This document shows positions 31,597 through 49,500 of a DNA stretch of 64,000 bases, one piece after another. The number at the start of each line of letters is the position of its first letter. The first letter of the stretch is position 1. Position numbers and translations under genes: made by a program. Below the pieces are notes generated by a model. That model was not told where the DNA came from, made no database searches, and saw only the letters and a program-made list of their open reading frames with translations. Source of the DNA: Tubulanus polymorphus. Taxonomy: Eukaryota; Animalia; Nemertea. The stretch covers positions 5,356,231 to 5,420,230 of the forward strand of contig NC_134033.1 of the NCBI RefSeq assembly GCF_964204645.1, in the 5' to 3' direction.

Positions 31597-34500
31597 CTAC
31601 GTAGACGCGACCGGCGATCGCTGTTGCGAGTTGGTCGTCTTTTGGCTGACAACATTGTTTATACGACCGATACTCATAGCCCACAAACTGGATGGCATCG
31701 CGGGTCTGAAAAATCAAAGGATAACGAGACATTAGGTTTAATTACGGGGACGAGTCAAATGGCAGCAAGGACAAGCTCTTAGTTTTTGACGCGATCTGAT
31801 TGGTCCTTATACCAAGTACATCTAGGCCAAACCATCAATAGGAAGGATGAGTACTGAATTCATAGTTTTATAGTTCGTTTTTGAAGCGATGTGATAGGCT
31901 TATATATCGAAGTTACCGACTCAATTGACCAATGAAGAGGAAGAACATTAAAATGATAGAAAGTTTTAGAAACAATCCGAATGGCCCATATAATCTAAGT
32001 CAGTTGATGAGGAAGAACATTAGAGTTTTCAGTTATTGAAGCAATCTGATAGGCCCAAATGTTAAGTTATAGTGTCAAATGACCAATGAAGAAGAAGAAC
32101 ATTAAATCCATAGTTGTAGATGCAATCTGATTGGCCAATATTTTAAGTATCTAAGTCAATTGACCAATAAGGGAGAACATTTGAGTTCTTCAATTTTGAT
32201 GCAATCTGATAGGCCAATACTAAATTGAATACCGTGCATGTTTCCAAGTCGACTGACCAAAACGATGTAGCAAAATTCAAATTAAATCTTAGCAGCAATT
32301 TCATTGGCCGATATACTAAGTATCTACATACGTCAATTGACCAATAGGAAGGAACAAGATTCTCATCAGAAGTTGTGAAAAAATCATCAGGGTAACAAAT
32401 TTTGTGAACTTGTTTGAGTACTACGTATCTGTATGTCTGTAGCGATTGTTTAGACTAGGATCATGTTTCATGTGTTTACGTGTTTGGCAGTGGATAGATG
32501 ACTTTTTTGTATATAAAATGTTGTTAGTGTGACTTTTTATCCAAGGCGGTAGTTTCTTATTTTATTTTAAGATATCAAAAAAAAACTCCAGGCGGGCGCT
32601 GATGAGAATCAAGTGATTTATTTTATATGGCCTTAGATCAATAAACCAACAAGTTTTCAATAAGTATTAAGCATCTGATTGGCCTGCCAGAGCCGGCTTC
32701 CAGCAAATAAAACAATAAGACCAGATAAATACTTGGATCGAATGAGGCAATCCTATAAAACATTTCGAAGATTTTTTCATTAAACTTACGGCGAATGTGG
32801 AGTTGACCTGTTGAAAGATTCAGCTGCATCGTGCATGATTTCGTCGAAATCTTTAGAATAGTTTGTAGATTTAGCAGATGACTCCGCCAGTAAATCATCC
32901 ATCGTGAATTTCAAACGGCCTGAAAAATTTCGAGAAAAGATTTCCTGTTTATTATCGATTCGAAATATGAAAATCAAGAGACTGAACGGTACGAACCCCG
33001 GCCCTAGTAGACACAACCTCAGTTGGCAGGGATTCAAACCTGATGACATAAGACTCTGTCCTAGTAGACACATTCCCCTCAGCATGGATTCGAACCTGAT
33101 GACATCGTGAGACCCTGTCCCAGTACAAACCCCTGCCCCTAATAGACACACCCTCAGTTGGCAAGGATTCAAACCTGATGACAAGACTCTGTCATGGTAC
33201 TAACCCCTGTCCTAGTAGACACACCCTCCTTCAGCAGGGATTCGAACCTGATGACATCGTGAGACCCTGTCCCAGTACAAACCCCTGCCCCTAATAGACA
33301 CACCCTCAGTTGGCAAGGATTCAAACCTGATGACAAGACTCTGTCATGGTACTAACCCCTGTCCTAGTACACACCCTCCCTTGGCAGGGATTCAAAATCG
33401 ATGACATCATTAGACTGTCATGGTACAAACCTGTCCTAGTAGACACATCCTCCCTCAAAGAGAAGAGCCAGCGTACAAGAATAAACTCGAATAAAATCAA
33501 ACTTACTGGCATCGATTTCGGGCGTCAAAAGTTTCGCCTTTTCGTAGAGTTGATTCGCCGTGAACGCGTGCGGAATGCGCGGGAACTCGCCGCGTTCGCC
33601 GAGGTCGAATCCGAACGACACGAGAATGTGTCGGAAGAACTTGTTGGACAACACGTTCTCCTGCGCGTCGGTGTACGGCAACAACGGGATGCAGCGGCCG
33701 AATTCTGCGAAAGGAAAAAATACCACACAATTAGAATTCCATTGGAATTCAACGAGGAGAACACGCTCATCTATTATCACCATTATCATTATCATTAGGG
33801 CAGCTTATTCCACGAGCGTGCAGCCAGGCGTGTTGGAAGCAATCTTTGATTGCCGCAGCCAATTGCGAAAAACGATGGGTCCAGGGACACCATGCCCGCT
33901 GGGAAAGTGGTATGAAATACTCAACAAACAAGCAATTTCAATATTCAACAACCCCTGGTGAACATATTAAGAAAGCAATGACCTAAATGAAATGTAATGT
34001 AATGTAATTTATTTCATCATCAATAAATTACGAATAAAATTTATAGTAAATAAGTAGATTGATGATGAGGGTCTGAACAGAGCCTTAAAGGCTGTACAAT
34101 CACTAGGATGTTCAGGCCCCCTAGAGAAAAAAAAGAAGATTAATGGTAATGATAACAATAGTTATAATTATAATAATAATAATAATAATAACAAAAATTA
34201 TGGTAATAATTATAATGACAATAACAATGATTATTATTATTATCATAATAATTGCAACCGTAATTATAATTATAATTTACTGTAAAAAGCCTCTTATTGA
34301 CATTTGAGCAGATGGAAGATAGATGAATCGAAAAAAATTGCTTTATGTTGGAATGTATTTCATTATCATCAATATGTACTAAGTGTTTGCTTTTTAAACC
34401 TGCTTTTCAATGAAATAATTGATGGGGTGGATTTTATAACGTGCGATTGAGCCTGCCACAATGACGGTGCTTTGCGAAGAAAAGATGAATTCAGTATATG

Positions 34501-37500
34501 CAGGGATGAGAACGCCGACCTGTAAAATCCGCGGGTTATTTTTCTTGAGTGACATACGCGAACCAGCTGACGGCGTAGCCGTCAGCACTAGCGAGCGCCG
34601 AAGGCGCGAAGCTATTTCGGGGGGGGGGGGTTTGGGGGCCCTCCCCCAAGAAAATTTTAGAAATTAAATACGTTTTCCGAGCACTTAGAGCGATCTCGAA
34701 CCCATGAACGACTATTATATTTTGGAAGGTAATGGCTAGTTCCAATGTGGTACATCCTCATTTGATGACATTCAGCATCTCATGCATTACGAGTCGAGCC
34801 CTGAATTATTGCATTAAAAATGCGCCGATGAATGCTCACTAAAAATCATCACCAAGTAGTGTATAATATCCGAAAGCGTTCGCCACACACACGCAGCAAC
34901 AGTAAGTAGACCTATATACGTTACTACTGTTGCTGTGCGTGCGTGTCTGCAACCGATCGATAAAATACATACAAACTCATCGTAGTACAAATGTACATAC
35001 AAAATCACTGTGTTGCAATGAATATGCATTGAAATGCGATACTTTTACGTGACGATAAGTAAAACAGGCACTGAACGCTTTTACGGTTCACCTGATTACC
35101 GATCGCGCCGGACCAATTGAGTGAGATCATCACCCCCCCCCCCATACTTTTACATCATTTTTGGACTATTTGGAAAATTGATATTTTTCAATACTGAAAT
35201 CCGCGGGAAACCGCGGATCCGCGGGGAATTCTCATCTCTGGTATATGGGATTTATGTAATTGTATTCTGGGAAAATTCCGTGATCTAGTATTGTATTGAT
35301 GATTAAATGAATTTTGATCAAATAAATTCATTATCAGCTGTGGAAGAGCATTGTTAATAACTCCGTGGACCAGTTTGAGAAATTCTAAGGTGATCATATC
35401 TTCGAATTTTAGTATTCTATATTTCTGGAAAATGGGAGATGTAGGTGTATTAAACTTTGCACCATCTAATGCTCGGATAGCTTTCTTTTGCAGTTTATGA
35501 ATTGTTTTCAAATGTTTTATGGATATAAGTGGTCCCCATAAGGAAAGGCAATAGGTTACGTGTGTATTTATATAGCTGAAATATAAAGAAGACGTTTACA
35601 CCAATTCGGCAATAAATTTTTAACACTTCTCAGTAAAAAAATATTCTTATTCAGTTTAGAGCATAATGCTTTGATGTGTTCGTCAAATGTGAATCTATTA
35701 TCAACAATGAGACCTAAAAATTTATGTGACCGAAAAAAAGCAATGTTGGTGTTACCAAAAGTTAGTAAGGGATCGTCTTCATTTTACCTTTGGGTGTAAT
35801 AAAAAGTCTGGCCGTTTTTGAAATATTTAATTTTATTATGGAGTCATTCTTCATAAAAATTGAGATAGAATTCAAATTTTTTCCAGTTAAACCAAGTGTT
35901 GTGTTGTTGGCAAAAGTATTCCCTTACAAAATTCTGGATTTTGACAAATATCATTTGAACATATCAAAAACAAAAGTGGTCCTAGGACAGAACCTTGAGG
36001 AACTCCATATTCTATGGAATCGATTTCAGAACAAGTATTGTTATAAATGACAAAAATTTTGCGGTTTTTCAAATAAGATTTGAACCAGTCAAAACCGACC
36101 CCACGAATCCCGTAATATTGAAGTTTGTACAGCAGAATGTCTATATTCAATGAATCGAATGCCTTTGATAAATCCAGAAACTGTCCAATGGTTTTGTCTT
36201 TGTTATCTAATCCTTTGATACAATTTCCCAGAAATTCCATTATTGCGTGGCAAGTTGAATAAGAGTGTCGAAATCCGTATTGACTTAAATAGAGAAGATT
36301 GTATTTAGTGAGAAAATTGTAAAGTCTGTCATGGATGATCTTTTCTAAAATCTTAGATATCGTTGGCAATAATGAAATAGAAATCACCAGAACATAATTC
36401 TTCTATATCTTCACTTGATAATCTATGAAATCTGGTAAATATGTTCTGAATTTATATTTATTTCCTTTTAATCCTTCATATTCCAAGTGAATAACTAATT
36501 TATTACCATATCTATTAGTAATTGTTTCAATATTTGTAATTAAATATTTCTTATGTAATGTTAATTCTGTTAACTTTTTGAATTTATAATCTACAGATTT
36601 AACACTTGTAGTATCTTTGATTCTATTTAAGAATTCACTGTCTATTTTTTTACTCTCCATTTATTATTCATATTTTTTTATTAAAATTGATTTCATTTAT
36701 ATGATATTCATATAATTGATTTTCATTAATATGTTATTATGCTAACACTTTTATGTTTGAAATTGATTTTATTCTAACAACTCATTAAATTCTCGTTACT
36801 TTTTCAAAATATGAATTATTTCACTCACATCTTAATATTCTTATTAAAATTGATTTTCATATATATGATATTCATATAAATAATGTTCATTTATATGATT
36901 TTCATATATTTGGAATTGTTAGAGTAATTGTATAAGTGTTGTTTCAGATCGAAGGTTGAAAGGTTGAGTGAGCGAAAAATAAATAAATTCGAGCGTGCGA
37001 GAATTTATTTCATTTTTTTTATGAGCTCGACCTTTTGACCTTTGATCTGAAACAACACTTATACAATTACTGACGTCATTTCGTTGTTTTGTTAGGAGAG
37101 AGTCCCAGGTTAGTAAACGATAGGTCAGGTGTGGGTAGATGAGGGTATGATGAAGTGTTAAGAGTGATTGTGTATCAAGAAAGTGTGGAATTTGTCGGGA
37201 TTAGACCTATAATTTGTGATATTTTCTTGGGTATTCTATAAATATGCGGTGTCCAATTGAAATTTTTGTGAATGGTAAGACCAATGAAATTTATTTCAGA
37301 AACTCGCTCTAGCAGGGAATTACCAACTTTCATTTGAAAATTTGGATTTAAGAAAAGGTTAACGTGTGGTGATGATGGGAAATTGTGCATTTTGTTTTTG
37401 CGAGTTACTTTACCGGCCATGCATGAAATTGAGGTCGGAATGTTTTGTCAAGATGTATTGTACTAGAGTTTTTAAATTTTTGTGAGATGCTAAGCAGTTT

Positions 37501-40500
37501 GTATCATCTGCAAATAGTATATCATTTAAGTGATGAGAGCATTTTTGAATATCATCTATGTAAATTAAAAAGGGGAGAGGCCGAGAATCGAGCCTATGTT
37601 AGAGAAAAGTGGAGAAAAACAGTGTTATTGAAGGAGTCTATATAAATGTTGACGGTTAGATAGATAGGAAAAGACCCAATCTGTCCTAATCCGCTTATTT
37701 CATAGTGTTCGAGTTTAGAAAGTAAAATATTGTGGTTGAGAGTCTCGAATGCCTTAGAGAGATCAAGAAATGTGCCAATTGTCCATTCGTGATTTTCGAG
37801 AGATTTTAAGATACTATCAGTAGTTCTAGAATGACGAGTTCAGTGGAATGACCTTTTCGAAAGCCTGAAATGAAGTTAAGCGTAATCGTGAACTAGTTTT
37901 TCGCAGATCTTAGAAATGGAACTTAGTAGAGAAATTGGTCGATAGTTTTCAATTTGATCGTCATCATTTTTGTGCAGATGTATAATTTTTTTTCAATTTT
38001 GATATTATCTGGAAAAATACCTAACGTTTAAATGAATTAAGACATTTATCTAAGTCTGATGCCTTGATCCAAGTTTAAGCTGATTTATGACTTCGGGCTC
38101 GGTAATTGGACCATCAATAAGGCCGTTTAAATAAGAAACGATTATGTCATGGAAACACAATCTTGAAATCACTCCCAATGTCGGTATAACATAAGCGGAG
38201 TTAGTAAGCTCTGTAAGCCCGGTATTCAGCATATTCGGCGCCACACAAGTACGATATTTTGTAAGCCCTGATCTCGTGTGAACGCTGCTGTAAACATCGT
38301 CAATCATGTCGACATCCTAATTTTCATCAATCATCGTCTTGTTTAGCCACTACACCACTGAGTTCTTGTTTAGAAATTTGTGACCATTGTTGTAACGTCG
38401 GGTGTTGTGACACTATTGACTTACAATAATTTGTGACACTATTGACTTACAATAAATATCCTACCATTCTCTGATACAAGAGTTGCTTATCAGACCCATC
38501 ACAGTGATTTCCAAGGATTGTTCCTTCCAAAATAAGGTCAACATCTCAGAAAGTCACTTTATTTTTGAAAACAAAACTGACAATCAACGATTATTTGACT
38601 GAATTTCTACAGCGTATTTTTGTACAGAAATATTCACGAATTTCCTGTCCCAGTAAAAGATAGATGTAAAAATTAACCGCAAAGTTACACATTTCAATCT
38701 GAACGCAAATATCAAATATGTGTTCTCTCCGTTCCTCGGATATTGGTAAAAATGTTGTAGTAGTGGATGGAAGTGAACACATCGCAAATGCGACTGAAAC
38801 TGTTACTAGCATTATTGTTGTACGTTTTGATTTTGAAGTTTTCTGATCAGACGAAACTATTTTTGAACCTCTAAATAACTGGATTATTATTACAGAATTT
38901 GATATAATTATCAAAGCTAAGGGTAAAAGGTTAGCGTGGATGACAATTACGGTGAACAGTCTTAATTGATCAATTAATTTATAGTAACATCCGAACCAAG
39001 GGTCGGAAAAATGAATCGACAAAGCAGGGGTGAGAAATATGACCAGCGCATTCACTACAGTAATTATCAATACTGCGATTCTAGCAAATCTCGGTGTACA
39101 TATCAAACGAGCCGTGAACGGGAAGAGCACAACTGCCATACGTTCCAGAGATATAACTACTATTAACCACGAACTATTGCAGGCTGCAAACACGGCTGCA
39201 AATTCATAGATTTGACAACTAATCAGCGAATTCATTATGATTATTGGACCAAAGTTTACGTGCAAGAGAACAAACTGTAAAAGAGGCATCAAAGTTAGAA
39301 CTATACAATACAGAGAATCGCTGAGAGACAAAACGATCAAATAGTTAGCGTAAGGTAAACTGCGGAATCTGCGACTTATCATTATCAGGAAAGTAGCTAA
39401 ATTTCCGAAGGCTCCAAATAGAAACACGATAGGCAGAATGACCAATGACACAATGCGGTGTCTGCCAGACTTGTTTTCCAAAGCCATGATGAGGAAATAA
39501 CTGTGATAAGTTCGACCAATTTGCATCTGCGTTGAATTCATGGTTCAGAGGACCAAAAGGAGAGTCTATACTGACTGAGAGTGTCTGTCTGTGAATGTAC
39601 TGGAACGGAGTGTATATTGCCGCATATTGGAAAATTGATATAACTTTAATATAACGAAGTCTTTATTGCAGCTACATTTCGTTTGTATATATTTGTATGG
39701 AATAAAATTTTAAATCAATTCTCAGAATACAACACAATACACATTGACGAGAGTTTAATGAATGTATATTTAATATAATTCGCGAACATCGTTTAAACGG
39801 AGAATTGTGTTATGTATATGATATTATATTAAGTTATATATTTTCACGCGTTTTTTAATGTATCCTGATATAGTCAACCTTGGTTAATCCGTCTCCGGTT
39901 AAACCGTATAAGTGCGAAATTCCGTATAAATAAATTGGTCCCGTTTTTCAGTAACGTTATTCCCTTTAAAATTCTGTGTCTAATTCGTACTCCACAACCC
40001 GTATTTTCACTTATTCCGTAGACAAATGCGCGGTCCCCGTTGTCCAATTTATATGTAAATCCTTATGTATAATCTGTATCAGCTGTTGGGAACATACACA
40101 ATTCTCATGAAAAAAAATATATTGTTATTGTGGAGGTAAATATTTATGATCACATAAATCAAAGCATTATCAAACCAATAAACATATCAAATATGAAAGG
40201 AATAATAATTACTAGATTTGATATTGAGTTTATTGAATTATGGAATAATGAACCAAATAATGAACAATACGTTGAGTATTAAGCGGTTAAGTGAATTGAT
40301 ATGTTTAAGTACTTCGTCAGCTTTTGTTGGAGCTAAAAAAATTGAATTTTGATTACGAGTCCCTAGATATGATTCAAAGGATTTGTTTGGAGGCGGTATT
40401 TTGCCTGCATAATTTTAACCACTGTACTAAAGAAAGTATTAAAGGAATTAGCTATATGAGCGTTGTCAGAAGCTGTTTTCCCATGAAAAATAATAGAATC

Positions 40501-43500
40501 ACTAGTTATTGAACTTTTATCATTGAATTTGCCCATTGATGATTTTAGGATATTCCAAAGTTTCCTGCTGTCACATTTAAATGACTCAATTTGTTTTGCA
40601 TAGTAGGTTTTTTTAGCAGCATGTTTTATCTGATTATATTTATTTCGGTTAAAAACATAGTACCGATATTTAATAGAGGTTTTATCAAGTCCTATAGAAG
40701 CTCTATACAATCTATCATATATATATATATATCCCTCTAGTCATCCAGGGTTCAGTAATTTTGATTTTTCTTGTCTATTTTAATTGTTTGGGTGAAATTT
40801 CATTAATGGTATGGTGTAATCTATCGATAAATGAATTATACGCGCTCTCAGAGTTCATAGTATGAAGGTTATTCCAATCAATCTGACTAAGCCTTTGGCG
40901 TATCAGGTTAACATTATCTTCGATGAAATTTCTATCGTGTATATTGCCTAACTCCATATTTCTACAAGTAGCTTTAGTGATAGAAAAAAAACATGGGTAA
41001 TGATCTGAGAGATAGGAAAGGCCTATAGCAGATTTAACAGGCATGATGTCTTGACTGATATATGTTGTCAATTAAGGTTGCTGTAGTGGGTGTTACTCTT
41101 GCTGGTTTTATCATTGTTGGCCAAAGACCGTGATTTGTATTCAGTTCGAAAAAGTTATTAGTGTTATAATGCTTGTTAATGTTTATAAAATCTAAATTCT
41201 GATCCATGCCTATTAATATTGATTTATTCTCAGTAGAGATTTTATCTAATAACAGTGAATAATCTTCTAGAAATGTTATTAGTCACTAGTGCCTGGCACA
41301 CGATATATTTCACCAATTATTAAATTCTTAGAATTTTGGCAGTTAATCTCAATGAAGCAGCTCTCGAAATAAGCTTCTTTAAATATACTAATATCGTCCC
41401 TAATATTCTGGTTGATATAGATATACGCCACCGCGAGTTTTGGATTGTCTATGTTTTTCTACTATAACGTAGCCAGGAATTTCACACAACGATACCACTT
41501 TGTCCGTAATAAAGGTTTCACACAAAAGTATTATATCAATGTTGAAATTTTGATCTTTACAACTCTGAATAAGAATCTTCAAATCGTCTAATTTATCATA
41601 GACACTGTGAATGTTGTATTGAATAACATTAAGTTTGGATTTGTTGTTAAAAGTTAGGCCAATTTCATCAATATCTATGTATGGACAGCTGGAATCTATT
41701 ATTTGGTGTCCATCGTCTATCAAGTTGTTAAGATTGTAGCTTCTAGAAGACTCTATATCAGTAATCTGCTTGTTTAGAACGTTTTTTAAACACATTATTG
41801 CAGGTCTAAGTGAACATTGAAAATTATGAATTTAGACTTCAATTAGAGCAATTTATCTTTAAATCCACTAAAATTAAGGGTGGTAGCACAGGCAAGTTTG
41901 TTTGATTACTAATAGAATTCAACTATAAGTGTAAACAAACAAGGAAGTAAACAGGTTCGTGGCTGAGGCAAATTCTAGATGAAATAGAAAAATGAATGAA
42001 TAAGAAAGTAAAAAAAGAACACAGACTAAAAAAGTCTTAAGTAAACACCGATTGGGAATCGGTGGTGATGCAACATGATTACAGTTTAAAGCTTTTTTTT
42101 TAAAGAGAAAGAAAGGGGGATATCATACCTAAACCAAATGGGACGTTGAATGTAATGACCCACTAGCTACAATTTTGCAATTGATAGTGGTTACAAAATA
42201 TGCCCAAAGACCAATACAATATGAACATACTAAGTTATTCAGCTTTTTAACGCCAATGACCTTGAAAGTCACCATAATCATGGACAATGTCACAAGCTAC
42301 AATTTTGCAATTCACTGTGGCTACAAAATACATTACCAATACATTATGAAAATAGTAAGTTATTTGGCTATTCAATGCCCCCTGGTGGCCTTATACAACA
42401 AACAATGACCTGGAATTACTTCACAATCATAGAAAAATAAAGCCTCTCTGAACAGACGGACAGCGGACGAAAAGTAAACGCGATAGCCCGCTGGGACTTA
42501 ACGTAAGTCGCAAGCGGGCGAAACATGTTGAAAATAACTCGTAAGACTTACTTGTGTAATACAAGGTCACCGGCTCTTCTTGAGGTGAATTGCGCGTCAA
42601 TCTCGAACCACCTAGAAATTACCGGAGAAAAAAAAGAGAAATAAAACCTCGGTCGCCGAAGAAAGAAAAAAATTGTTCGCGTTTTAATAAGTTCTTCGAT
42701 CAAAATTCTCTACTTTTCTCCGTTTCTAAAGAACTAAATCAATCATCAATGTAAACAATACGAATCACTGAGTAGAAAATGAAAGACCCGCGCATGTAAA
42801 CTGAAATTAGGAATTTCGTTCGCCAGAAATAATATATGGCTGAAATTTTTACAGGGGTTAGAGTATGTTTTGGGGTGTACGAATCAGATAATTTTTTGGT
42901 AGGTCCTGCGATAATCTATCGAATCGGAAGCCGAAATATTTCAGTGATGAAAGTTGATCGATAATGAACTAATTCTGACGACGTATGACCGAGCGCTCGA
43001 AACGCCATCTGGCGGCATTTATAACCGCAGCCATGCGCAGTTCCCATAGGGCGGTAGACAATCATGGGTCAGCTGTGTAAGGTACCGCGCATTGTGGGTA
43101 GGAGGTCGACTTACCTAGCTTTATGTAGCACGCTTCTAACAGCGTATTCTGCAACCATTCGACGTGTTCGGAGCGCTTTTCTTTGTGTAGTTTTTGAACG
43201 CAGAACGAAATGTAGTCGTTAATGTCGCCACGTTCGCGATCGAATTCGCCCACAGATGCATCGTTCAGCTGCAAGATTAAAATTTGAAAGCGCCTTTCAA
43301 CGACCTGTTTGATGCGAAAAAACATCTAGTACGGCAATGGAGGATTCGACTTGTGGCAAGTGAGGATCCACCAGGTGTCGCTAGTTTGCAGTAGAACATC
43401 AACTACTGCAGCAATTGAGGGTTCTACCTGTGGCAAGTGAGGATTTACCAGGTGTCGCTAGTGTGCAGTAGAACATCAACTACTGCGGCAATAGAGGATT

Positions 43501-46500
43501 CAACTTGTGGCAAGTGAGTATCCACCAGGTGTCGCTAGTGTGCAGTAGGACATCAAGTACTGCGGTGATAGAGGATTCTACTTGTGGCAAGTGAGTATCC
43601 GCCAGGTGCCTTTAGCATGCATAAGACATGAACTACCGAGGAGATTGCGGATTCCAGTTTGGGTAAGTGAGGATCCACAATGTGTCGCTTGTGTGCAGTT
43701 GGACCGAGAATGTGTAACTGTTTGGCGCACCATCCGGTGGGATAACTAGTTCCATGGGATCCTCATTGTATTCGTGTATCTGGGCCGTGCGGAAGATATT
43801 ATGAACGTACCATGGAATGAGTGAGCTCATCAGAGAAATGAACTAAGCCTAGTTCCGTCAGTCTCGCCAGCACCTACGACAGAGAAAGAGAACATTTAAA
43901 TGAAATATATCTATACCTACACAGAATCGAGGCTTTTGAACAACCGAACTACCGCCTAAATAATCACAAATATACAGCTTGATTTTCTAAACGAGAATAA
44001 CTGTTCTGTTGGCGAAAATAGGATACTGACTGTTTAAGTCAAGGATTCCACTTATGGCAAGAGAGGATCTGCCACCGGTTCTAGCCGCTATATACTGGGT
44101 ATAGCGCTCAACCTAAACCCAATCCTAATTCATCTTGCAATCGTTAAATCTCACCCTTAACCCAATTCCAACTCTAATGCTAACGAAATTGAAATATTAT
44201 TTGAACCTCTCCCTGGGGAGAAGTAACATCTGAGCTACTACTAGGTGCTCAGGAATCATCGGGCCAGGTACCCATTTACTCCTGGGTGAAGAGAGGCAAT
44301 GAGGAGAAGTGTCCAAGGACACTATGGTAATATACAGGGTTCGAACCAATGACCAGGGTCACCAGAGTTAAACGCCCTAGCCACTCGCCCACACTACCTA
44401 CTCAACTGGCTATTGCCATATATTATCTTACCGATACTTACGGCATTTTTCGTTTTGTGCGTTTTATCCAAGTTCAAACCGGACCAAACCATCGTCAGCA
44501 TGTCCGGTTTATCCATGTACCGTAGGTAATACATGCTGAGCTTCTCCGTCTCCTCGAGCGTCCAATCAGACGACTCGGTCGCATCGCTGGAAATAAAAGA
44601 AAGACATTTCTCGTCAGGACTGTCCAATGTCAATGACTGATCATTTATATTAACCCTTTCAGTGCTGACTAATCAATACCCTATAGTGCTGGAGATAATT
44701 TGTAAATTTTGAAAAATTCCACCCTAGTGTGTTGAATAACGGTAATACCACTATAGTGCGTATACACCGCGGCGCGGTGTATCGTTAGTTACTAATATTT
44801 CACTATGTTTGACAGGTGCTGCCATCTTTCAATAGAGATAAAAACTAATTACTAGTTACATCAATACACCGCAGTGCGGTGTACCAGCAAAATCCATCAC
44901 CGATTCATACACCCATTGCGGTGTAGGCGCACTGAAAGGGTTAAGCGAACTGATAATAACTTGATAGTCTCAAGATTTAAGACCACTGGATCCAGTTCCA
45001 CAGTTGTGAGTTAAATTTGACACGATAGACCTAAAACAAAACATTGAAAAATGAACCGAGTAAACTCTAACTCACAACTGTGCAACCGGGCCCTGGACTT
45101 AACTCCTCGACTGTGGACCCCCAAGTAAAACCATCAGGAAGTTACTGAACCTGACAAATGGACTACCCCGAATAGCTCAACAATCGAGATTCTTGAGGTC
45201 ATTTCTTTTACCTGTGAATAGCTTCGTCGAACCCGGTCTTCGCGACGACGAGGAATTTCGAGAACGTGTAGTCGATCAAGTCGTCGTAGTTCTGAAGTAA
45301 ATAGAGTAAATCAAAAATAAAACAGAATGAAACCGCGTCGAATTTTGAACTTCAAAATTGTACATATATGAAATGGTTTTAAATGGAAGTTTCTGTAGAG
45401 GTCTGGCCGTAATGTGGTTTTGTCATTACGCTATATTGAACTGATTTACATCATGGCAAACACCCAGTACGTAGCTTCTACAGGCTCTTTATTGTGTCTA
45501 TATCTATTTGCGTGACACACCCCAAAAGATTCCGACAATTACTTTCGAAAGACCTTCCCCGATTTATCAAATTGGAGAATTATCTACATGCACATGCATA
45601 CATAAATACATGCGCTACCGAGTTCCCTGATTGTTAACTCAGTGAAATATTTACAGCAGTCTCAACGCTACCGAGTACCCTGATTGTCAATTCGGTGAAA
45701 TATTTACAGCAGTCTCAACGCTACCGGGTTCCCTGATTCTCAACTCTTGTGAAATATTTACAGCAGTCTCAACGTTACCGAGTTCCCTGATTGTCAACTC
45801 TGTGAAATATTAAGACAACGAATACCAAACGACGTATACGAAACACACGTACCTCTTGCAGTTTATGATTTTCATCGCAGATCGCCGTGAACGTCTCGAT
45901 GATCGGAATTTGCAGAAGCATGTTGGGTTGCTGACAGTCGCCGGCCACGTGGTGCATCATGGTCAACAAACAGTCGTTCAGAAAATCGGTGTTCTGTCGA
46001 AATCGCGTCAGCAATTTGCCGTACTGGGCCATCATACTCTCCGTCGCGAAACTATGAAATAAACGACAACAAGAAATAAGTTAAACAGAGTTGTCGAACA
46101 GCCCGGTACACTCAGACGTCGAAAAAAAGATAATAAGGTTAGAACCGGCTCGACGCAAATTTAAAAGATCAAAAACTGAAATCTATTTATCGACAACGTA
46201 AAATATCAAAAATTCGCAGATAAGATATGAACATCATTAAATCAATGTTTCTTTCCAGTTAAATCAAATTCCCTGCATTACGGCCCGAGACCCTCACGCA
46301 GCTAACTGTCTGGAAACTTTTTCATTTCTCGAAGAAAGTTTTAAAAGGAGAAAAATTTCATCCAAATAGATCCCGAAAAGCCCATCCAAATTTTCAGTGG
46401 GAGGGCCACATACAAGAGCCAACACCAATTACCATGCTTGTAGCACTCGCATTGCCGAACAAGCCCTTAACGGTCCATTCTTATTTTCAGGTCCACCCCT

Positions 46501-49500
46501 GTCGAAGAATCATAAATCCTAGAAGTTTCACAATAAACACATCAAAGTATAAAACAACGCAAACCTTATCGAGGCGACGCAGGCTTGGAGTCATGCCATA
46601 TTTTCCAGGGGCCAGTTGCAGAGTCGTGAATTAAGTCCGGTTTAAACAACTGAAGATCGGTCTTAAGTTGTTAGATTGGCTATATAATCAAGTTGGTCTT
46701 AGACTGGTCATAAGTCTTAGCCATTATTATGCAACCGACCCCCCGAAGTGCAGTCACCAGAATGCCGTACGATGCGTACGGATGAACTTACTTTTTAACA
46801 TGAGCCAGCATGTTGAACGTCAGCGTAGTCGCGGCCGCCGCGTTGTTTTGGCTGTTTACGACGTTCTCCATCATCAGCAGCAAACGATGGTTCGTCATGA
46901 TCGCTTTCGACAGAAAATCCAACGTCTGTTCGTCGTCGTTGCTGTTGTTCTTATGCAGACGGATTAACAGAACGTAGAGCATTCGAATGTCGTACGACGC
47001 CGTCAGTCGAACTGTCGAAAATAAATCGAAGTAGCTATTTGTTTATTATTACCACTCATTTTGCTTTCTTTTCCCCTGAATATTCCCTGACATGCGCTTT
47101 GGTTTTCCCTGACTTGATCTGCTAAGAATCTGATCCATTAATTAACACAGCCGAATACGTACATAAAGAGATAAATGGAAACTGTTTGATTTTACATGCG
47201 ATAAGGCTGTCTCAAATTTCCCTCACTTTTTCCGGATGATATTTAGCTTCTTTTTTTCCTTTTTTTCTTATATAAAATTCTCAAACTTTTTCTAAGACAA
47301 TTTCCTGACTTTTCTTGATGCCCAGGTAAGTGAAGAAAATTCAAAATCAGTCTCATTCTTAACATAATGAATGCTTTCGATGATATCTGGGGTGGGAAAA
47401 GACAGGAGAAATTACCTAAGGTGATGGGGGATACAATGAGCAGGTTTTCCATGGGGGTGGGTACAGACAGCAGATTGTCTGAGGGGGTGCAGGGTCCAGA
47501 CAGCAGAATATCTGACGGGGTGTAGGGTCCAGACAGTAGATTGTCTGAGGGGGTGTAGGGTACAGATATAAGATTTTCTGAAGGGGTGCAGGGTACAGAC
47601 CGCAGATTGTCTGAGGGGGTGTAGGGTACAGATATTAGATTTTCTGAAGGGGTGTAGGGCATAGACAGTAAATTGTCTGAGCGGGTGTAGGGTACAGATA
47701 TTAGATTTTCTGAAGGGGTGTAGGGCATAGACAGCAAATTGTCTGAGGGGGTGTAGGGTACAGATATTAGATTTTCTGAAGGGGTGTAGGGCATAGACAG
47801 CAAATTGTCTGAGCGGGTGTAGGGTACAGATATTAGATTTTCTGAGGGGGTGCAGGGTACAGACCGCGGATTGTCTGAAGGGTCGGGGTGAATGTGGTGT
47901 AGACTCGTACCTTGAAGACTTGTGATGAAATTTTTGTTTCCGTTCAAACCTTCTTCCATCATGAACGTGTCGAGCACGGCCAGGAGTTCATACATCGCCA
48001 TTAAAACATTGTGTAGCCTGAAATACCACGATAAGAAACGCAGATCAATAACAGCGTATCCGACCCTACATCGCGAAATTCCGAGTGATAATGGGTGATT
48101 ATATCACTCGATGTTTACGGAAACCGATTTCAGACACACTTACTGTTTCCAGTAGACACGAGCGGCCGATTCGTCGATTTTCAACGACACTAAATACCGT
48201 TCGCTATAGTCGACCGCTAAATACGTCAGATAGCTGAAGATCTCCGCCGAGTACGCCGGCCTACGAAAAATAAAAACGAACAAATAAATGAAAAGAACGG
48301 CGCGAACAGTCAAAATAGCGCTCGAAGGTAACTAGGAGTCCTAGTTGAAATGCCTGACTACGTATCTGAAAATATCGCTATTCAACACCCTGGGCGAACT
48401 TCAATTATCAGGGTTAGTCGACTATAGTCGAACTAAGTGAAACCGAATGTAAATTAGTTGAAACTATATCGCGAAAATTGTAGTTCGGACCTAATCCCAA
48501 GATGGCTGACATTGTGAAATACGTTAAAACCGAACTATAGTGCGTTCGGTTATTAGTCCTGATGATAGTCCAGTATAGCGTGAGTACCTGTATAGTGGCA
48601 TAGTATAGTAGGCCTATTGGACGGGGAGTACATACGTACAAGCCCAAGATTTTATTCATATTCGAAAATTCATTTTTCAAATCAGGACCTTCTTTGGATT
48701 TGGGTGGTCTGTCGTAACTAACCCATTTAACCCCCAATCACTACGGGCCTGAACATTGCATACCGTAAGTCTGACTCCTGTTTGTAGTTTGTTCAATTGA
48801 CTTCACACGCTGATAGGCTTTTGTAAATTGAGGATGATTTTTAGGCCTATCCATCATTGATAAAATCTTAAATTTCAGCATCCATATCCTACAACACACT
48901 AGCGACATCTGGTGGATACGGTAAGTGGAGTCCTCTATTACCACAGTAGTTGACGTCCTACTGCACACTATTGACACCTGATCCTCCTTGCCACAAATGG
49001 AATCCTTTAAGGCAACAGTATATGTCCTACTGCACATTAGTGACACCTGGTGGATCATCAAGTGTCACAAGTGAAACCCCCAAATGCAGCGGAAGTCGAT
49101 ATCGAAATGCGCGCTAGTGACAAATGGTGGAACCTCACTTGCCGATGAAACGTTAAAAAAATAATAAATCTTGCCACTTACTCGACAGGATCCCAGCCGA
49201 CTTCTTCCATGACGGCGAATTTCGAGAAGAACATCAGCGTCCACAGAAAATACGACTCGGCCTGTTCGTACGATATCCCGTTGTAGTTGTAGTTCGACCG
49301 CAGCAGACTGGCCTGAATACAGAATGGAAACATGTCAATATGATACGAACCGTAAGCTATTCCGTGAGACCTCTAACGGGCAAAACCAGCTATCCCACCA
49401 GATGGCGTGACGAGCAGTAGGTCATCAGTAGGTCAATTTTCGAGCAGTAGGTCAATTTTCGCTCGATCTTTCTTCATCTATAATCTCTAATACATATTGT

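Follow-up and report, generated by a model that had tools for sequence, protein, structure and literature searches.

An intact receptor gene lies inside the wreck of a retrotransposon, within an intron of timeless in the nemertean Tubulanus polymorphus. The window, a stretch of 64,000 nucleotides from contig C9 (5356231-5420230) of the 268-Mb assembly, carries timeless on its minus strand. One timeless intron (33705-43114 of the window) encloses an interspersed repeat, a long interspersed nuclear element (LINE) inserted in that repeat and, within the LINE, a 3.9-kb foreign block (~36376-40288) that holds a single-exon class-A G protein-coupled receptor (GPCR) gene. We think that the block is a break-repair patch, end-joined into the LINE, whose donor has been lost or is unassembled, and we put the probability of this at about 0.55. 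So read, the event is of an ordinary, known kind, a break-repair insertion that yields a nested gene; the nesting itself is real. An earlier sequence-only reading of the window had proposed the order outer repeat, LINE, receptor block, and this order is upheld by what follows.

The evidence for the order comes from the LINE, for which a copy on contig C11 (locus L027, 94% identical) served as reference. Window positions 42156-40289 align to it at 93.5%, positions 36378-35241 at 93.4%, and then positions 34500-33992; between the segments ending at 40289 and 36378, L027 holds 198 extra bp, in frame. All parts of the window copy lie on the minus strand: a 5' part (40289-42154), which reads up to ...EVLKHINSL; a part of the second open reading frame (ORF2) with the reverse-transcriptase domain (35241-36375), which reads from ISLLPTISKILEK on; and the 3' end (33985-34500), which is 86% identical to the C11 copy and finishes in a short ATTAC-like tandem tail adjoining the target-site duplication. 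The frame is broken in both of the larger parts and is interrupted many times overall. The sequence-only reading had seen colinear halves of one ORF2 with roughly 65 codons missing between ...EVLKHINSL and ISLLPTISKILEK; both parts do align in order to the C11 copy, and the gap is 66 codons. The Kimura two-parameter distance to that copy is 0.041±0.005 for one half and 0.038±0.006 for the other, and the halves therefore share one age and belong to a single subfamily. Directly outside the LINE, both ends carry the 7-bp target-site duplication AATGACC (33978-33984 and 42155-42161), where the same reading had noted it. Thus, the element has the reverse-transcriptase domain, the duplication and the 3' short-repeat tail of a LINE. 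The C11 copy keeps open pieces of 223 and 626 codons and an RVT_1 domain; Pfam found no endonuclease domain in its broken ORF pieces (E<=0.01). "CR1-like", the name first given to the element, is an architecture-based label only.

The repeat outside the LINE is a single copy of one interspersed element, formed by 33869-33984 together with 42155 to ~42530. The first piece is its head, which includes one AATGACC. The remainder starts with the other AATGACC, continues with about two tandem units of 154 bp and has a hairpin in its tail. When 33985-42161 was removed in silico, the flanks aligned unbroken across the junction with nine other copies of the repeat, at 70-74% identity. The tail is ~80 bp and itself repetitive (206 candidates); in other copies it stands ~0.5 kb beyond the tandem units, in the same orientation. 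Its hairpin (42486-42519) has a folding energy of -14.6 kcal/mol (z -3.9). The HINE-like layout proposed earlier was thus confirmed: like HINE/DINE-1 elements, the repeat combines a head with a central array of ~154-bp tandem repeats and a tail, in which a stable hairpin stands close to the end. Thomas and colleagues reportedly described this layout in 2014 for Helentron-associated elements, and "Helentron-like" is here a label from architecture alone. The two nested elements also bear on the idea that the receptor is ancestral in the intron and that the LINE parts inserted independently, one on each side of it. The receptor lineage is indeed far older than the LINE. However, the upstream LINE part has no LINE 3' end, the halves are colinear, equally diverged and separated by a gap of only 198 bp, and removal of the whole LINE leaves the outer repeat unbroken, so that we regard an ancestral receptor as scarcely credible.

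The block stands in place of the 198 bp of ORF2. It is a mosaic in which four or more repeat fragments are combined with unique DNA and with the receptor gene, which has the conserved upstream region of its family. At its left end is a fragment of an abundant repeat, TE-A (36372-37073; ~1,800 candidates, 86-92% identity over the first 360 bp), which at the LINE junction is short by ~50-65 bp compared with other copies. A three-way comparison showed that ATGA (36372-36375) is common to the LINE and to TE-A, a 4-bp microhomology, and hundreds of reads from other TE-A copies part from the window at 36374. Within TE-A there is an imperfect palindrome (36923-37071; 149 bp, 80%), common to copies elsewhere. 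The next fragment (37128-38022, minus strand) is the reverse-transcriptase tail of a second, unrelated LINE, 79% identical to C9:8621923-8622864, with an ORF at 37175-37420. Near-unique DNA with only short, weak matches elsewhere (38023-38565) follows and lies 3' of the receptor; then come the receptor cassette (38566-39747) and single-copy DNA (39748-39867). The right end consists of MITE-C, a short abundant repeat (39868-40099; 950 candidates, up to 93% identity), a further abundant repeat that adjoins it (40100-40230) and a 48-bp piece of another high-copy repeat (40229-40276). Neither inverted nor direct terminal repeats were found at the block ends, and we consequently rejected the block as a discrete transposon. 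No poly(A) or other A-run was found at the block and no target-site duplication around it, and in a search of the whole assembly no second site carried it. A foreign block of this size lacking poly(A) is what the sequence-only reading had described.

These features separate two routes of entry. A processed retrocopy does not fit a site where 198 bp of target were lost and where there is neither a direct repeat nor an A-run; and since the upstream region of the paralogues is present in the block, the receptor is no bare copy of a coding sequence. A target microdeletion with junction microhomology and no duplication is the pattern of a break-repair patch. The 198-bp loss, the absence of a duplication or tail, the 4-bp microhomology and the mosaic flanks therefore fit end joining with a captured patch, and they support the earlier suggestion that the receptor came as DNA cargo or break-repair filler rather than as a plain retrocopy. 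The interspersed repeat in the timeless intron was hit by a full-length LINE, which inserted by ordinary target priming and duplicated AATGACC. Probably afterwards, ~198 bp of its ORF2 gave way to the 3.9-kb piece of genomic sequence, which brought several repeat fragments and a complete receptor gene together with its upstream region; by the time of the move, the receptor was an old, diverged member of its family. We propose that a DNA break had occurred in the LINE and that the foreign piece, be it DNA or complementary DNA, was captured there through end joining, either non-homologous or microhomology-mediated.

The nearest known counterparts are the class 2 templated insertions, which have no duplication and no poly(A) and show microdeletion and microhomology (Onozawa and Aplan, PMC5110952). 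The block shares with them the absence of duplication and poly(A), a target deletion, junction microhomology and an insert unrelated to the target. It differs in that it measures 3.9 kb and includes a whole gene with its upstream region, and in that its template locus is not in the assembly; moreover, it is fixed or present in at least two haplotypes of a nemertean, whereas class 2 insertions are a human polymorphism. Several points weigh against a break-repair patch. Patches in the literature are as a rule far smaller than 3.9 kb. Templated patches keep the donor intact, whereas no donor of the block exists in the assembly, where its unique flanks are single-copy and the nearest receptor paralogue is 82% identical in DNA. 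The junction 40288/40289 cannot be checked for microhomology without a donor. Finally, the contigs that cross the outer junctions have short-side anchors of 18 and 30 letters, below the bar of 31.

Part of the same evidence can be read in another way. A reverse transcriptase might have left the LINE RNA in ORF2, copied a 3.9-kb read-through RNA that carried the receptor in sense, and resumed on the LINE 198 nt further on, so that everything entered in a single event under one duplication. Such a template switch is the main rival, and we hold it to be possible, if unlikely. Receptor, second LINE fragment and host LINE are all on the minus strand, although a shared orientation has a 50% chance anyway; there is microhomology at a junction, a single duplication surrounds the whole, and the LINE runs on past the block to its 5' end. 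Buzdin and colleagues are said to have described L1 template-switch chimeras with U6 or mRNA, and chimeric retrocopies, and the block has in common with such chimeras the sense fusion to a LINE, the junction microhomology and the one duplication. Known chimeras are two-part, however, with the foreign RNA at the 5' end, whereas in the present case LINE sequence continues beyond the foreign DNA; and the block, unlike them, includes upstream DNA that does not look transcribed. Template switching would thus require two jumps and a 3.9-kb RNA with ~750 nt upstream of the receptor start, a promoter-like region included, and it too needs a donor gene, of which none was found in the assembly.

The repeats at the block ends raise a different possibility, that of stepwise nesting. 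A TE-A-like element would have inserted in the LINE, the receptor would have come through capture by an unrecognised transposon (rolling-circle or composite), and a late deletion at microhomology would have taken 198 bp of the LINE together with the end of the repeat. Both block ends do lie in abundant repeats, the intron clearly gathers insertions, and at other loci no more than ~1 kb separates pieces like the inner part of TE-A from pieces like the right-end repeat. The relative orientation of these two pieces in the block is unlike that at the other loci, though, the block lacks terminal repeats, no further copy ends at the same points, and more events are required. We consider this course improbable.

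Since high-copy repeats at both ends could also promote a false join, we examined the assembly itself, using short-read data. Contigs of two runs span the ends of the block without a mismatch, over 36202-36396 in X2 and over 40169-40318 in X1; the outer joints 36378/9 and 40288/9 are crossed without error, and other short-read contigs cross every inner boundary of the block. Among the sequencing runs listed for the stretch, none that contains it is recorded as RNA, and X2 and X3 look like low-coverage DNA. In the unique part, X1 differs from the window at ~0.8% of sites, and therefore a second haplotype or animal carries the block. An independent Illumina sample, X4, gave ~5x on the unique DNA of the block, which it cannot place, and ~0.5x at 40396-40700; possible reasons for this drop in depth are a polymorphism, an artefact of coverage or a divergent allele. 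One name is used for two separate species, the Atlantic form and the Pacific form (PMC8468679), the latter being T. ruber, and this may be relevant to the assembly check. A misjoin would be in keeping with the repeats, the 18- and 30-nt anchors and the near absence of X4 depth at 40396-40700. Set against it are the error-free contigs from other runs over both outer joints and all internal boundaries; furthermore, a misjoin would hardly yield a 7-bp duplication and exact colinearity of the LINE halves. An assembly artefact is consequently very improbable.

The LINE also places the event in time. Its distance to the C11 sister is 0.04 substitutions per site, so that it entered the intron at most that long ago, and the block, lying within it, is later than the LINE or simultaneous with it. 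The silent-site distance (dS) from the receptor to its nearest relatives, 0.44-0.54, is ten times greater. Thus, an old gene has taken up a new place. The sequence-only reading had spoken of a recent mobilisation of the receptor; the relocation does post-date the LINE, which dates it only loosely, whereas the receptor lineage is old. That reading had also pointed to the frame that stayed open. We simulated neutral decay of a 951-bp frame with the LINE's own ratio of indels to substitutions: the frame stayed open with P=0.25 at d=0.01, 0.06 at d=0.02 and 0.009 at d=0.033, and the open receptor frame is no more than a modest sign of constraint since the move. A search of the 268-Mb assembly with the entire block, as well as with its right end and its flanks on the 3' and 5' sides, revealed no donor locus and no dispersed copies with the same boundaries, the only matches being repeats and receptor paralogues of at most 82% identity. 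Flow cytometry gave ~358 Mb for the Atlantic form (PMC8468679), and therefore about a quarter of the genome is unsampled; the donor possibly lies in this unassembled DNA, or has been lost.

The receptor itself is an uninterrupted frame of 316 amino acids (38591-39541, minus strand), as first described, and matches Pfam 7tm_1 with 65 bits (cut-off 30.5), its residues 50-294 aligning to profile positions 6-260. It has ERM in place of the canonical E/DRY motif and NFYIY in place of NPxxY, and both variants are common to its paralogues. Such variants are common in chemoreceptor-like expansions. Similarity among paralogues extends from the coding sequence into ~200 bp of upstream DNA, which holds short tandem CAGTCAGTAC-like repeats, and into ~20 bp downstream. 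In the window copy, an AATAAA stands ~30 nt past the stop codon. The conserved upstream region (39542-39747, minus strand) is a candidate promoter or 5' untranslated region; just before the start codon, it and the same region of loci L002-L010 show a short tandem CAGTCAGTACACTCTCAGA-like motif of variable number. A six-frame search of the genome gave 126 scored places (125 besides the window copy) at 66-75% identity, from 2,116 first-look candidates, and only three of the scored places have an internal stop. A 21-nt stretch that codes for part of the second intracellular loop occurs 306 times at no more than one mismatch (0 times for the reversed control); the family numbers at least 300 copies. 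The copies lie in arrays, chiefly on contig C2 at 6.6-8.2 Mb, and as singles on all large contigs. Among ten paralogues, about 30 of the 33 nucleotides at 39078-39110 (coding ARLICTPRFAR) are invariant, while silent sites otherwise differ by ~0.4.

Compared with its nine nearest paralogues, the window receptor has a ratio of nonsynonymous to synonymous divergence (dN/dS) of 0.30-0.41, well below 1; the median among the other nine copies is 0.34. This low ratio mostly reflects the history of the gene prior to the move. At sites invariant in the nine paralogues, the window copy has 13 private changes and the others have 0-8. We discounted this comparison as a test for relaxed constraint: the count is biased, for no other copy of the set is as distant as that in the window, whose dN/dS does not differ from theirs. 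In the public protein set, the proteins nearest to the receptor are at most 58% identical and come from Tubulanus polymorphus, and an exact look-up of the protein in other assemblies returned no record. The family seems largely unannotated, perhaps because it is masked as repeat. Lineage-specific expansions of class-A receptors have been found in two other nemertean genomes, in a survey of Lophotrochozoa that makes no mention of Tubulanus or of transposons (PMC11886862). Like those expansions, the family described here is large and fast-diverging, evolves under moderate purifying selection and is both tandem and dispersed; unlike in that survey, most of its close members are missing from the public protein set.

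The receptor lies wholly inside one timeless intron and on the same strand as both the LINE and timeless. It shares with other nested genes of animals a complete single-exon structure inside a host intron on the same strand; it differs in that the split LINE still reveals how the gene got in, and in that the guest gene is a predicted one. The locus is a clean case, in that the remains of a transposon tell in what order and by what mode a gene came to lie in an intron, and the event illustrates a route by which genes of a very large receptor family could leave their tandem arrays. It reveals no new mechanism, and the receptor is known here from its sequence alone. A bolder proposal is that a working chemoreceptor-type gene was moved with its promoter, by break repair and in sense, into timeless, its donor being lost, and that patching is a regular route of dispersal by which the family has come to occupy all chromosomes. 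If this were true, transcription of timeless might be linked to expression of the receptor or to the receptor's polyadenylation signal; we find the proposal very unlikely. The chief practical value of the locus is for annotation, since it comprises a 9.4-kb intron, a receptor family mostly missing from public proteins and several young repeats that are now defined.

The intron that hosts these insertions was delimited by searching each timeless exon singly, no joined spliced model being used. The predicted upstream coding exon (43115-43268, minus strand) ends in phase 1 at 43115, followed by the donor gtaagt (43114-43109); a ttgcag acceptor places its predicted start at 43268, and the exon matches positions 2-25 of the Pfam TIMELESS_C profile. 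The downstream exon (33506-33704, minus strand; 199 nt, EFGRCIPLLPY...) matches profile positions 38-88 (E=5.6e-6) and also the PAB domain of human TIMELESS (chain 4xhw). The upstream exon ends in G before gtaagt and the downstream exon begins with AATTC at 33704 after cag, giving an in-frame GAA. From the exon ends, the GAA joint and the continuity of the profile, it follows that the intron is 33705-43114 (minus strand; 9,410 bp, GT-AG, phase 1). The sequence-only reading had bounded it at 42551. This limit fails, as the 61 nt before 42551 break the frame and have no place in the TIMELESS_C profile, and we rejected the gtaagt at 42546-42551 as a donor on the reading frame and on profile continuity. 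This donor mimic, which had been taken for the exon border, lies ~15-20 bp beyond the end of the tail hairpin of the outer repeat.

As to the type of the host gene, exon 45775-46035 matched Drosophila TIM (8dd7_B) with E=7.5e-10, compared with 0.045 for human TIMELESS (7pfo_K). On this one exon, the comparison tentatively points to a gene of the tim1 type. The PAB domain is matched by two timeless exons other than this one. A clock role for timeless in nemerteans is assumed.

A young element interrupts the LINE between its 3' end and the part with the reverse-transcriptase domain (33985-36375). It is a non-autonomous DNA transposon of 740 bp (34501-35240), with terminal inverted repeats CAGGGATGAGAA and CAGAGATGAGAA, flanked by GTATATG. 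It is absent from the C11 LINE and inserted in the window LINE as a further event. Its termini are Ac-like (CAGGGATGAGAA) and the flanking repeat is of 7 bp. Of 786 candidate copies, 40 were scored; these are 96-99% identical to the element, which was therefore active very recently. Elsewhere in the span of timeless, 47243-48001 (minus strand) is an ORF of 252 codons made of tandem 11-residue repeats (PYTPSENLISV / PYTPSDNLLSM), which may be a coding repeat or an intronic minisatellite.

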